This document shows, piece by piece, positions 21,843 to 24,240 of a DNA stretch of 64,000 nt. Below the pieces are notes generated by a model. The model was given only the letters and a program-made list of their open reading frames with translations, made no database searches and was not told where the DNA came from. The stretch is taken from contig CP075496.1 of the NCBI GenBank assembly GCA_021613535.1, positions 13,268,001 through 13,332,000 on the forward strand, in the 5' to 3' direction. Numbering within the stretch: position 1 is the stretch's first letter; each line of letters starts with the position of its first letter. Both the position numbers and the translations under genes were made by a program. The DNA is from Adineta vaga (taxonomy: Eukaryota > Animalia > Rotifera).

Positions 21843-22575
21843 TATTGTAATATCAGTTATATTGAATTCTCCCTCAGATCTATCTTCAATCAAGAATATG
21901 GCAGCAAAAAATCTTCGTATCGGTAATTTTACTATTGAAGCATCGGGTTTTGACAAGAAACATGTGTTATATTGGTATATTGCTGTGAATATTTTCCAAC
22001 AATCAATTATTCTTGTTCATCGTGGTACAAAAATGTCAAATCGAGTATGAATAAGCTTACATTGTATTTGATAAGGAGATTTTTTTTAAAATAATTCTAG
22101 AATGATGTTTTCGATGATCTCGACCGATTCACAAGTCATAATACACATGGACAGCTCAATATAGATTTTCCTTATTTATCTAAATCTAAACATGTTTATG
22201 TTGATATTGGTTTCTATAAACGATTTCAAGATGAAAAACAAGCAATTATATCTTCTGTTCGTGAAATTCTTGAACAATATTCGTCTCCTTCATTTTCATT
22301 CATTGTTGTTGGTCATTCACTTGACTCTGCAGATTTTGTCAATGAAATAACAACGAAATTCGATACACCAAAAGAACGTTATGTTCGTATTGTGAATGGA
22401 AATGATCTTATTCCACATGTATGTTGTGGTGGTAGTAATGATCACGAATACAGTTAAGGAATAGCATTAAAGCAATTATCATGATCAAATCATAGTGCTG
22501 TTGGTCGTTTTTCAATGGAGGATGAATTTTGTAGAATTGCAAGTAATCAATGAAACGCTGTTATTGCATCATACA
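21843..22575 (+). pseudogene. 5'-truncated duplicate of the lipase gene (copy of ~16961-17866)
   Basis: Near-identical direct repeat that retains the intron. It carries 99-bp and 75-bp deletions and stops TAA at 22455 and TGA at 22482, and lacks the signal peptide. Confidence 0.92.
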
Positions 22576-22688
22576 TGTGTCAATGTTTTTTTCTCGTTCT
22601 TTCATGAGTAATATATAAGTAATCATACAAAAGATAAAAACATTTTTATGTAATTTTATTTTCGTCGTTGAAACAAACAGAATCACCA

Positions 22689-23962
22689 ATGTTGGCAATT
22701 GTGGATGATATTCAAAGACTTCATGAGCATGAAGGAGATATGCAATTAGTTAAACAATATGAACGACGACAATTGAAATTAGGCAAACGATTAGCATATT
22801 TACTTCGATATGGAGCAGAAAAAGAAGGGTTGCGAGTTGATGAAGGTATTGTCTGAGTTTTTCATCTCCCGAAACTATCTATCCAAGTTTAATTTGAAAG
22901 GTTGGATTCTCTTGTCCGATCTTGCCAAAGTTCCATTGATGAAAGAATATACAGAAAACGAATTACTTGGTGAAGTTCAAACATCCTATTCGTATAGAAA
23001 AACACCGAGATATCAATGGGAAAGACGACCTGATGGAATTTATGTTCGAGCTGCTTATGGTCGAAAATTTGAAAGAGTAAATTTTTTTTTGTAAACTTTG
23101 TTTTGATGTTTGAATTGATTTCTAGAATCCTTTTCATGAACAAACTCAAATTCGTCGTTTATTAGATTTAACATTAGACTATGTTTGTCAAAATATTCAG
23201 AAATATGATTTAGAAGGTTTTCCAGATGAATTTCTAATCAAGTAATTTTCAATATGTTCTAAAAAAAATGTTTTATTTTTGTTTCTTAGTGAAATTATTC
23301 ATCGAATTAAACGGAATGGAAAATTAACAAGTAAAATCTTTCAAAATCTATTGTCACAAACGATCGAACATTTGGATCTTGATGGCATTTACCTTACAGG
23401 TTGGAAATGAAGTTGCGAGCAAACACAAGTTTTATTATTCGACTCTTTTAGAATCAGGTATTCGAGCTGTTTATACGAAATGTCCAAATTTAAGAGTATT
23501 ATCATTGAGAAGTTGTGGTTATGTTCTCAATGATCATTATTGTGAACAACTTATTCGAGTATGATACTTTTACAAAGAAAAACAAATTCTATTATCAATT
23601 CTTTCGTTTAGAAATGTCCATTAATCGAATCTCTTGATCTATCCTATTGTCGACATTTAACTGATCGAACATTGAATAATCTAATAAAATATTATTCGAA
23701 TAATCTTCTTCATCTTATACTTTCGGGAAATCATAATTATACTGGTGATGGAATCGTACGTCTTGTCTCAGAATGTCAACAATTAAAACAATTAGATATA
23801 TGGGATAATCCAAATTGTACCAATGATGTTCTTAACATCTTAATTGCATTAGGAAAATCCCGAGGTGACGATCGTGCCATAACTATTGTACATAAGAATC
23901 TTCAACATCCAGCTGTTGCTCCTGACAATCCATGGGCAGTTGTAAATGCTAAAACACTATAA
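22689..23962 (+). CDS. Tpt1/KptA RNA-lobe domain fused to a BC-box-like segment and AMN1/FBXL-type leucine-rich repeats
   Basis: Six-exon reconstruction: LGKRLAYLLRYGAEKEGLRVDEGWILLSDL..RKTPRYQ..IYVRAAYGR (Tpt1 N-lobe pattern), IRRLLDLTLDYVCQNI..FPDEFLINEI, then LRRs IEHLDLDG, LRVLSLRSC, IESLDLSYC, LLHLILSGN, LKQLDIWDN. Frame is continuous across all splice junctions. Confidence 0.8.
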
Positions 23963-24156
23963 AATCGAATACACCTAGATTTTATTTATATTCTATTTGT
24001 TAACAATGAAATATATATGAATACTGGAAAAAGAGAGCACCTGTTGTCCGCGAATGATTTGTCAAAGAAGAGAAAGAAAAAGAATTTCTCATTTTAATCT
24101 TGAACTGTTCGATAAGATCAACTTTCGAAATATCGATAATGTATGGAGACAAAATG

Positions 24157-24187
<31 letters not shown>

Positions 24188-24240
24188 GAAAGAATTTGAT
24201 TTTTGTTGTTGTTATTGCTATGAAAAAGTCAACATTATAG

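Follow-up and report, generated by a model that had tools for sequence, protein, structure and literature searches.

A rotifer member of a bilaterian protein family joins a catalytically inert Tpt1-type RNA lobe to a BC-box-like helix and a short leucine-rich repeat solenoid

Does a gene in a 64,000-nucleotide stretch of Adineta vaga DNA (hereafter the window) really join the RNA-binding half of a Tpt1/KptA 2′-phosphotransferase to leucine-rich repeats (LRRs) and, if so, what might the resulting protein do? A sequence-only reading of the locus had described such a fusion, with a BC-box-like segment between the two parts, and had interpreted the product as a catalytically dead reader of phosphorylated nucleic acid that recruits a ubiquitin ligase. 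The peptides that it quoted are present in the sequence where it had placed them. The observation is confirmed by the analysis reported here and the interpretation is partly supported: the protein is the A. vaga member of a bilaterian family in which a catalytically inert Tpt1/KptA RNA lobe is followed by a BC-box-like helix with a second helix and then by a short LRR solenoid of the FBXL/AMN1/Rad7 type.

The gene occupies positions 22689–23962 of the window on the + strand, with six exons that comprise 1017 nt and encode 338 amino acids (Table 1). Moving the exon 5/6 boundary by a single base gave an intron with proper GT..AG ends and made the residue at the junction K instead of E. Three studies (runs X1, X5 and X15) supplied spliced RNA contigs in which all five introns are precisely removed at the predicted GT..AG sites. 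These contigs begin at 22690 and splice at 22845/22901, and those from X1 and X5 extend as far as 24137. Because they span every junction, including the 23076/23126 junction between exons 2 and 3 that had been put forward from the sequence, a single mRNA carries both the Tpt1-like and the LRR exons, as the sequence-only reading had supposed. A gene-model artefact, or two separate genes read as one, is ruled out by the same contigs. The rotifer gene is real and transcribed.

The end of exon 2 is in phase 0 and coincides exactly with the domain boundary, and exon-sized open reading frame fragments from other organisms stop at this breakpoint too, after FE(K/R). When the genome was searched with exons 2 and 6, only the gene itself was matched, so there is no second copy in the haploid assembly. 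An exon-by-exon search of NCBIfam gave no useful match. The fold, complex and Pfam tests described below were made on the Adineta steineri orthologue P0066 rather than on the spliced A. vaga protein; the two are 84% identical and align without gaps.

Table 1. Features of the gene, in window coordinates
Feature	Position	Strand	Description
Exon 1	22689..22845	+	Start codon, poorly conserved 26-aa leader and first RNA-lobe helix (LGKRLAYLLRYGAEKEGL)
Exon 2	22901..23076	+	Remainder of the RNA lobe; contains R89 (in RKTPRY) and VRAAYGRKFER
Tpt1/KptA RNA-lobe homologue	22767..23076	+	Winged helix, aa 27-111, split by intron 1
Exon 3	23126..23241	+	Conserved NPxH linker, BC-box-like helix and beginning of the FPDEFL helix
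BC-box-like motif	23156..23185	+	R122-L-L-D-L-T127-L-D-Y-V131
FPDEFLINEIIHRIKR helix	23219..23314	+	aa 143-158, spans intron 3; Cul2-box-like or F-box-helix-1-like by pattern
Exon 4	23290..23399	+	Last pre-LRR helices and first LRR strand
Exon 5	23452..23558	+	Cysteine-type LRR (CPNLRVLSLRSCGYVLND...); profile matches to FBXL2/SKP2
Exon 6	23612..23962	+	Rest of the LRRs, C-terminal cap and tail, stop codon
LRR solenoid	23363..23893	+	aa ~175-316, six strands, FBXL/AMN1/Rad7 type; introns 4 and 5 fall within it
3′ untranslated region	23963..24137	+	End is the limit of contigs X1 and X5

Residues 27–111 are homologous to the RNA lobe of Tpt1/KptA, in sequence and in fold. P0066 matches positions 2–84 of the 177-position Pfam profile PF01885 at 29.4 bits (cut-off 26 bits), the match of the homologue P0013 ends at profile position 83, and each of the 52 aligned family members matches PF01885 over the N-terminal half only. 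With exon 1 alone, residues 27–52 match profile positions 2–27 (17.7 bits, E 0.004), and a Pfam search with exon 2 alone gave no match. A profile of the N-terminal domain compared with the PDB found only Tpt1/TRPT1 chains, the best being 7yw4 (E 8.8e-10). In the 7yw4 alignment, the R-Y pair of the family lies over R23-H24 of the yeast protein and R89 of the family lies over the arginine of the KQRF motif. The fold model of the domain (pLDDT 89.4) agrees with mouse TRPT1 at TM 0.79 and an rmsd of 1.5 Å by Foldseek, and at Z 12.1 and an rmsd of 3.2 Å over 86 residues by VIA-align. In both rankings Tpt1 chains come first, taking places 1–21 in Foldseek and places 1–3 in VIA-align, and La motifs come after them; the matches ranked lower include the winged helices of cullins and of ESCRT-II. 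The RNA lobe is one of the better-conserved regions of the family, with a mean pairwise identity of 49%, compared with 40% in the LRRs and 14% in the leader.

The second half of the enzyme is missing. The NAD+ lobe, which has the ADP-ribosyltransferase (ART) fold and corresponds to PF01885 positions 85–177, had no match among the 52 members, no protein-to-PDB match reached beyond the RNA lobe, and the residues after 111 fold in the model as helices and LRRs. The description of the locus as half a Tpt1 lacking its NAD+ lobe was therefore correct. Tpt1's catalytic tetrad Arg-His-Arg-Arg (as defined in PMC6333775) is represented by Arg40, Tyr41 and Arg89, the fourth arginine having gone with the NAD+ lobe. 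Since this lobe and the fourth arginine are missing and the histidine has become tyrosine, the family cannot be an enzyme of the Tpt1 kind.

In the RNA lobe, Y37, L39, R40, Y41, R102 and E110 are invariant among the 52 members, R89 is present in 51 of them, and K33, R34, R85, R102 and R107 are each kept in 46–52. The QGHS motif of Tpt1 is replaced across the family by A-x-Y-x-R-x-F-E. In the rotifer protein, the changes of LRH to LRY and of QGHS to YGRK are as the sequence-only reading described them. Its two retained arginines are also there, with one correction: the second catalytic arginine is R89 in the K-x-R-F/Y motif, and the arginine of the ‘VRA’ string is not the only one concerned. 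In Tpt1, the equivalent arginines contact the 2′-PO4 and 3′-PO4 and the role of the histidine is only modest (Banerjee et al. 2019, PMC6333775). As far as sequence can tell, the retained arginines and other basic residues make up the pattern expected of a polyanion site that has been kept. The invariant His-to-Tyr change and the replacement of QGHS may mean that the ancestral phosphate recognition has been altered or abolished.

Between the RNA lobe and the LRRs there is a helix that resembles a BC box, for which the published consensus is (S,T,P)LxxxCxxxΦ (PMC4878042). The A. vaga motif RLLDLTLDYV keeps the leucine and the Φ position and has R in place of S/T/P and T in place of C/S/A. Across the 52 members, position 122 is T or R, L123 is found in 51, position 127 is C in 31, S in 11, T in five, A in four and G in one, and position 131 is V or I, giving a family consensus of T/R-L-x-x-x-C-x-x-x-V/I. 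All four positions of the published consensus are satisfied by 27 of the 52, and a further 18 deviate from it at the first position alone. We modelled P0066 residues 112–338 in a complex with A. steineri Elongin C, which gave an ipSAE of 0.78 (the median of three runs, with contact agreement of at least 92% and a partner pLDDT of at least 77) compared with 0.02 for the best control. Of 78 solved complexes, 51 reached this mark, as did two of 108 mismatched pairs. The modelled interface sets the BC-box helix, residues 117–131, against Elongin C residues 78–117, with L123, T127 and V131 as the core contacts, and residues 145 and 148 also touch Elongin C. As many BC-box complexes have been solved, the pass may partly reflect familiarity of the modelling tool with such structures. 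Binding of Elongin C through the BC-box helix, an idea already raised from the sequence, is thus a prediction of the complex model with the family consensus beside it.

Downstream of this helix, F143, P144, D145 and E146 are nearly invariant and residues 146–158 are helical in the fold model. The cullin boxes are Φ-P-x-x-Φ-x-x-x-Φ for Cul2 and LPxP for Cul5 (PMC4878042). To bring F-P-D-E-F-L-I-N-E-I into line with the Cul2 pattern, its final hydrophobic residue has to be displaced by one place, and the linker holds no LPxP. The Pfam SOCS and VHL profiles had no match on excised linkers, and the F-box profiles (PF00646/PF12937) had no match either, whether in the 52 members (E ≤0.001) or in five excised linkers (E ≤10).

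The solenoid that follows has six β strands in the fold model, at 177, 202, 229, 256, 282 and 313, so the earlier estimate of ‘about five’ repeats was a fair one. In fold, the C-terminal part comes closest to yeast Rad7 in its Elc1-bound form (Z 18.9, rmsd 2.2 Å, 173 residues). The family profile matches FBXL2 (E 4.8e-35) and also FBXL17 and SKP2; the Pfam LRR models matched by members are LRR_4, LRR_6 and LRR_At5g56370, and precomputed annotations add LRR_FBXL15. By language-model features, the named clusters nearest to the C-terminal part, after its own cluster, are ‘protein AMN1 homolog’ (0.91, 161 shared features). The resemblance to AMN1 that had been proposed for this region therefore has a counterpart in these features, at the level of a lead.

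The rotifer protein is no oddity. About 50 full-length homologues with the same three-part architecture come from molluscs, annelids, a nemertean, a brachiopod, rotifers, echinoderms, a hemichordate and amphioxus, so that this is a conserved family present in at least eight phyla. No member was seen in vertebrates or ecdysozoans, in searches of a kind that are unable to show absence. A search with exon 2 brought the family to light; its matches to P0002, P0006, P0007, P0009 and P0014 were set aside as spurious, these being repetitive proteins with ‘PTYQWERSPDG’-like strings. The architecture had been thought uncharacterised, and our literature search turned up no publication about it; the family is, however, already listed in databases across these phyla under automatic names, among them “2′-phosphotransferase” (UniRef) and ‘F-box protein SKP2B-like’. 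The first of these labels is probably wrong for the family.

We give about even weight to the prediction that these proteins are substrate receptors or adaptors of an Elongin BC-cullin ligase that carry an inert nucleic-acid phosphate-binding module. In such a receptor, the BC-box helix would dock into Elongin C and the LRR solenoid would grip a protein target, while the winged helix would bind phosphate-bearing nucleic acid through Arg40, Arg89 and several of the invariant basic residues. Candidate ligands would be an RNA 2′-PO4/3′-PO4 junction or a terminal phosphate, and the ligase could thereby be recruited to such RNA or made responsive to it. The nucleic-acid binding in this scheme, with its specificity, is our inference, as are the choice of cullin, the substrates and the part played in the animal. 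A fuller version, which we regard as rather doubtful, would have the dead lobe read the 2′-phosphate or terminal phosphate marks that remain when RNA has been cleaved or has undergone 5′-phosphate ligation of the Trl1/Rnl type, whereupon the Elongin BC-cullin ligase would ubiquitinate the proteins on that RNA, in a pathway conserved from rotifers and molluscs to amphioxus.

The C-terminal part could also be read without a ligase. The protein would then be an AMN1-like scaffold that uses the solenoid and the Tpt1 lobe to hold a protein partner on RNA, to sequester 2′-phosphorylated RNA or to compete with TRPT1, and the BC-box-like helix would be a mere structural cap. The proximity to the AMN1 homologue clusters and the failure of the linker to match SOCS, VHL or F-box profiles are in keeping with this, and our literature search found no paper that ties animal AMN1 to Elongin or a cullin. 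We nevertheless think it unlikely, given the near invariance of L123 and of a hydrophobic residue at 131, the Cys, Ser or Ala present at 127 in 46 of the 52 members, the passing Elongin C model with its canonical interface and a top fold match that is Elc1-bound Rad7. A different ligase is suggested by the FBXL-type LRRs, by the pipeline annotation of some members as ‘F-box protein SKP2B-like’ and by an LP-D-E-hydrophobic pattern that reads like the start of an F-box. On these grounds the protein might be a degenerate F-box protein that binds Skp1 as an SCF receptor, with the FPDEFLINEIIHRI helix as F-box helix 1 (compare SKP2 and the FBXL proteins). This is quite improbable in view of the unmatched F-box profiles, the lack of a third F-box helix and of the conserved Trp when the segment is read, and the placing of Elongin C on the upstream helix in the model.

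The other two alternatives concern the RNA lobe. Winged helices are frequently protein-binding, and the Tpt1-derived domain may have left nucleic acids behind to become a protein-binding or regulatory element, for example one that binds substrates or is autoinhibitory. The invariant Tyr in place of the catalytic His, the loss of QGHS to A-x-Y-x-R-x-F-E and the presence of winged helices from cullins and ESCRT-II further down the list of fold matches would all fit. Both phosphate-contacting arginines and the five basic residues listed above have nonetheless been kept, and the fold neighbours next after Tpt1 are the RNA-binding La motifs, so we hold this change of function to be distinctly unlikely. 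That the protein is an active RNA 2′-phosphotransferase, as the automatic UniRef name would have it, draws on just such names and on the PF01885 match. It is effectively refuted by the architecture: the BC box and LRRs occupy the space of the unmatched NAD+ lobe with its fourth catalytic arginine, the catalytic histidine is tyrosine, and a separate, intact TRPT1 is encoded elsewhere in the A. vaga genome (C2:4046849-4047548), where the sequence-only reading had suggested that one should be sought.

Matches to RNA_lig_T4_1 are also present in the A. vaga genome. Animal tRNA splicing proceeds mainly via RtcB, and work of 2010 by Englert and colleagues reportedly dealt with an animal 5′-phosphate RNA ligase. 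To our knowledge, Tpt1 is the sole protein module dedicated to the recognition of an internal RNA 2′-phosphate. The family described here keeps the recognition lobe, drops the chemistry and couples what it keeps to a probable receptor of an Elongin BC-cullin ligase. If the predicted receptor function is true, a mark at an RNA end or junction would be linked directly to protein ubiquitination, and the Tpt1-derived lobe would be a ready-made, testable ‘reader’ domain with a bearing on the role of 2′-phosphorylated or terminally phosphorylated RNA in animals. On the practical side, a family carried in public databases as a 2′-phosphotransferase is very probably no enzyme.

Each part of the predicted receptor can be set beside a known system. 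The likeness to Tpt1/KptA/TRPT1 is confined to the N-terminal 85 residues and takes in the L-x-K-x-L-x-Y-L-L-R helix together with the K/x-x-R-F/Y arginine, both of which touch the 2′- and 3′-phosphates in the enzyme; the family differs in lacking the ADP-ribosyltransferase lobe and the fourth arginine, in its invariant Tyr and in the replaced QGHS. Rad7, a SOCS/BC-box LRR protein, binds Elc1 as part of the GG-NER E3 ligase and acts in a nucleic-acid-linked pathway; its BC-box residues L168 and C172 stand just upstream of its solenoid (PMC4551923). In Rad7 a BC-box helix, and in the family a BC-box-like one, directly precedes a cysteine-type LRR solenoid. Rad7 has no Tpt1 lobe, however, its linker is longer, its repeats are more numerous and its partners are Rad16 and Cul3; the likeness to it is a structural one.

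The VHL-box LRR receptors of CRL2 (LRR-1, ZYG11B/ZER1 and PRAME) share with the family an N-terminal BC box, a Pro-containing second helix and LRRs, and the ZYG11B-EloB-EloC structure aligns to model residues 111–338 with Z 13.3. Here the similarity is weak, the family fits a Cul2 box only loosely and none of these receptors carries the remnant of a nucleic-acid-binding enzyme. The AMN1 homologues, nearest among named clusters by language-model features, are similar in size, in the style of the pre-LRR motif and in their FBXL15-type repeats, a likeness at the level of a lead, but have no Tpt1 lobe. A parallel in design logic is PCMTD1 of vertebrates which, according to its published account (PMC12590147), combines a PCMT1-related domain with a SOCS box and has experimental support as a CRL5 receptor for isoaspartyl-damaged proteins. 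The domains are unrelated, and the damage is recognised on protein and not on nucleic acid; what the two would have in common is that a domain akin to a repair enzyme does the recognising for an Elongin BC-cullin ligase.

The genomic surroundings of the gene are eukaryotic (30% G+C, introns of ∼50 nt), and the gene is single-copy in the haploid A. vaga assembly (100.8 Mb in six contigs). An open frame of 1017 nt, encoding 338 residues, runs through six exons; the boundary between exons 5 and 6 was shifted by one base to give GT..AG, which altered one residue (K instead of E). Transcription was checked by placing contigs from four public RNA runs on window positions 22500–24150. Three studies (X1, X5 and X15) had spliced contigs, with exactly the five predicted introns removed, all GT..AG; the exon 2–3 junction predicted by the sequence-only reading (23076/23126) was among those present. 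The spliced contigs join all six exons, and the Tpt1-like exons and the leucine-rich repeat (LRR) exons therefore belong to one mRNA. The contigs reach ∼24137 on the 3′ side and 22690 on the 5′ side, the latter at an allelic bubble that marks the limit of the contigs rather than a defined 5′ end of the transcript. A (GAAA)n microsatellite lies just past their 3′ end. One of two allelic X1 contigs carries 22720 T>A, 22722 C>T and 22744 A>G, which read by codon as L11H, H12Y and Q19R; all three lie inside the poorly conserved 26-residue leader, and H11 and R19 agree with a Rotaria orthologue.

Coordinates of the gene and of other A. vaga features (C, assembly contigs; L, loci)
Feature	Position	Strand	Basis
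Window	C4:13268001-13332000		
Studied gene	window 22689-23962	+	open frame
Exon 1	window 22689-22845	+	frame and spliced contigs
Exon 2	window 22901-23076	+	frame and spliced contigs
Exon 3	window 23126-23241	+	frame and spliced contigs
Exon 4	window 23290-23399	+	frame and spliced contigs
Exon 5	window 23452-23558	+	frame and spliced contigs
Exon 6	window 23612-23962	+	frame and spliced contigs
(GAAA)n microsatellite	window 24150-24190		
Intact TRPT1	C2:4046849-4047548	-	PF01885
Second PF01885 locus	C1:15116463-15116699		PF01885, RNA lobe only
ORF of second locus	L002:1402-1740 (~C1:15116364-15116702)	+	112-aa ORF
RNA_lig_T4_1	C3:13973277-13973852		PF09511
RNA_lig_T4_1	C5:4272192-4272853		PF09511
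RNA_lig_T4_1	C1:10869659-10869919		PF09511
RNA_lig_T4_1	C1:12153477-12153815		PF09511
Elongin C genes on C1 and C4	L010:1429-1707, L011:1483-1776		

Database searches were run exon by exon, and the joined 338-aa model was aligned locally with the fetched proteins. Whole-protein Pfam searches, folding and complex modelling were done on P0066, the natural orthologue from Adineta steineri, in place of the A. vaga protein (338 aa each, gap-free alignment, 84% identical). Exon 1 alone matched positions 2–27 of PF01885, the RNA 2′-phosphotransferase (Tpt1/KptA/TRPT1) profile (17.7 bits, E 0.004), and exon 2 alone gave no Pfam match. Residues 27–110 of P0066 matched positions 2–84 of 177 (29.4 bits, cut-off 26 bits), and all 52 aligned family members matched the profile, in its N-terminal half only. 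A PDB search with the family domain profile returned 11 sequences, every one a Tpt1, TRPT1 or KptA, the best being yeast Tpt1 (7yw4, E 8.8e-10). The AlphaFold model of the domain (pLDDT 89.4) aligned with mouse TRPT1 at TM 0.79 and rmsd 1.5 Å over 86 alignment columns in Foldseek, and at Z 12.1 and rmsd 3.2 Å over 86 residues in VIA-align. Tpt1 chains took ranks 1–21 in Foldseek and 1–3 in VIA; La motifs came next, La being a reported fold neighbour of Tpt1 itself (PMC6333775). The proposal of a half-Tpt1, with the RNA lobe present and the NAD+ lobe absent, is thus borne out by both profile and fold, and we hold the architecture and its homology to the Tpt1 RNA lobe to be nearly certain.

At the tetrad positions of Tpt1, the first arginine (Rsl R16, Cth R18) corresponds to an invariant R40 in the family, the histidine (Rsl H17, Cth H19) to an invariant Y41, and the second arginine, in K-x-R-F (Rsl R64), to R89 in 51 of 52 members; the fourth position, an arginine of the NAD+ lobe, is missing with the whole lobe. 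The HMMER alignment to yeast Tpt1 likewise places the family's L-R-Y over L-R-H and R89 over the arginine of K-Q-R-F. In Tpt1, the two arginines contact the junction 2′-PO4 and 3′-PO4; their replacement by alanine slows catalysis hundreds of fold, and step 2 was affected only threefold when the histidine was mutated (Banerjee et al., PMC6333775). Further near-invariant basic residues of the family lobe are K33, R34, R85, R102 and R107, and a family-specific A-x-Y-x-R-x-F-E stands where Tpt1 has QGHS. Mean pairwise identity is 49% in both the Tpt1 lobe and the BC-box region, 40% in the LRRs and 14% in the leader. Few parts of the protein are as well conserved as the lobe, which argues that it is under constraint and not a decaying remnant. 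Together with the pattern of kept residues, this conservation suggests that a phosphate or polyanion site may be retained. An active 2′-phosphotransferase is excluded, since the NAD+ lobe is missing.

An intact TRPT1, which the sequence-only reading had advised looking for, was found on C2. Its PF01885 pieces span profile positions 4–177 and its motifs read LRH ... KKRF ... IRAHQGHS. The ORF at a second locus, on C1, is 70% identical to the C2 TRPT1 lobe, keeps LRH and KQRF and stops after IRAQHRQ, with no match to the NAD+ lobe in its neighbourhood; possible readings are a truncated duplicate or pseudogene, or else a gene for a free-standing RNA lobe. The genome also has four PF09511 matches, the best (41.7 bits) inside a 416-aa open frame. 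Ligases of this Rnl1/Trl1 type, acting on 5′-phosphate RNA, are one possible source of 2′-PO4 RNA junctions.

Queried with exon 2, HMMER gave a protein of 379 aa from Elysia marginata (P0013) and exon-sized fragments, and two word-seeded searches from the exon 2 matches gave at least ∼50 full-length relatives of 300–395 aa. The spliced model aligns with relatives over residues 30–330 at 37–45% identity (E down to 3e-86). Members among the matches listed come from gastropods, bivalves, a chiton, the annelids Owenia and Capitella, the nemertean Lineus, the brachiopod Lingula, the bdelloid rotifers Adineta and Rotaria, sea stars, a sea urchin, Saccoglossus and Branchiostoma. Among the matches listed from these word-seeded searches, which took in at most 8000 candidates, there were none from vertebrates, tunicates, arthropods, nematodes, flatworms or cnidarians, which is no proof of absence. 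Automatic database names include ‘F-box protein SKP2B-like’, ‘uncharacterized protein’ and ‘2′-phosphotransferase’; the last is given by UniRef to P0013, P0017, P0066 and others and is likely a systematic misannotation, the NAD+ lobe being absent in every member. No paper on this architecture came up in full-text literature searches. The gene belongs to a family that is conserved, yet unstudied and probably wrongly named.

In every exon-sized ORF fragment from another organism the break comes after F-E-(K/R), followed by V as from a GT donor, which is where exons 2 and 3 join. Because this position is shared across organisms, the domain-boundary intron looks old, which would fit an exon-shuffling origin of the fusion. 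P0013 has a V-initial insert of ∼20 residues directly after FEK (residues ∼108–140); as it lies at the conserved intron position, it is probably an intron retained in the gene model.

In the full-length model of P0066 (pLDDT 87.9), helices 123–133, 146–158 and 164–170 lie between a conserved N-P-x-H-x-G-T linker and the first LRR strand. The published consensus for the BC box is (S,T,P)LxxxCxxxPhi, and that for the Cul2 box is Phi-P-x-x-Phi-x-x-x-Phi (PMC4878042). Family columns 122, 123, 127 and 131 hold T or R; L (51/52); C, S, T, A or G (31, 11, 5, 4 and 1 members); and V or I. All four positions fit in 27 of 52 members, and 18 more fail at the first position only. The cysteine is present in members from deuterostomes and in many from molluscs. 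A. vaga and the three rotifer sequences alike have R-L-x-x-x-T-x-x-x-V, so that the threonine noted earlier at the usual cysteine position was correctly seen.

Residues 112–338 of P0066 were modelled with A. steineri Elongin C (P0090), this pair being used because an A. vaga Elongin C gene is intron-split. Two Elongin C genes are present, on C1 and C4, each with its last helix beyond an intron after ...YKAKYT; the first exon of the C4 gene matches NCBI's A. vaga protein P0082 at every residue. The complex gave a median ipSAE of 0.78 over three runs, with at least 92% contact agreement between them and partner pLDDT of at least 77; of the three controls, the best scored 0.02. Of 78 solved complexes 51 reached the pass mark, as did 2 of 108 mismatched pairs; for eukaryotes the figures were 39 of 65 solved pairs for which older structures include no similar complex, and 2 of 126 pairs that are unrelated. 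Confident contacts join residues 117–131, 134, 137–138, 145 and 148 to Elongin C 78–117, with L123, T127 and V131 at the interface centre in the canonical BC-box arrangement. As many BC-box complexes are already solved, this pass indicates likeness and does not prove that this copy binds; on the model, Elongin C docking appears rather probable.

Two rival accounts concern the C-terminal part. In one the protein is a degenerate F-box/Skp1 receptor: the family profile matches FBXL2 (E 4.8e-35), FBXL17 and SKP2, and F-P-D-E-F-L-I-N-E-I resembles an F-box first helix. The profile also matches Rad7 (E 2.4e-14), KDM2B, COI1 and TIR1, and ZYG11B weakly. The F-P-D-E-F-L-I-N-E-I segment fits the Cul2 box only if shifted by one residue. 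Pfam F-box, SOCS and VHL models had no match in whole family proteins or excised linkers, and the best structural match, yeast Rad7 in its Elc1 complex (5zb2_A; Z 18.9, rmsd 2.2 Å, 173 residues), scored ∼2 Z units over SKP2. The other account is a ligase-free AMN1-like scaffold. The nearest named clusters by language-model features, the family's own aside, are ‘protein AMN1 homolog’ (0.91), and the AMN1 resemblance seen earlier stands as a lead at that level; the Elongin C model points to a ligase link, which thus has in-silico support.

The observation holds, and the anatomy first read from the gene was right. We propose that the protein would act as an Elongin BC-cullin substrate receptor carrying an inert Tpt1-derived module that binds nucleic-acid phosphate. 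For the N-terminal domain, the rival reading is that the winged helix has taken on protein binding, against which the kept R40 and R89 speak; retained binding of phosphorylated nucleic acid is conceivable, if somewhat doubtful. An RNA-reader function is hypothetical, and the whole chain, in which an RNA mark is read and a ligase then recruited, we consider unlikely.

The closest structural parallel, Rad7, partners Elongin C and Cul3, and its BC-box residues L168 and C172 (PMC4551923) sit just upstream of the solenoid part aligned with the model (model 139–330 on Rad7 198–404). ZYG11B–EloB–EloC aligns with model residues 111–338 (Z 13.3). Among known kinds, the family sits with the BC-box LRR cullin-ligase receptors, as a variant.
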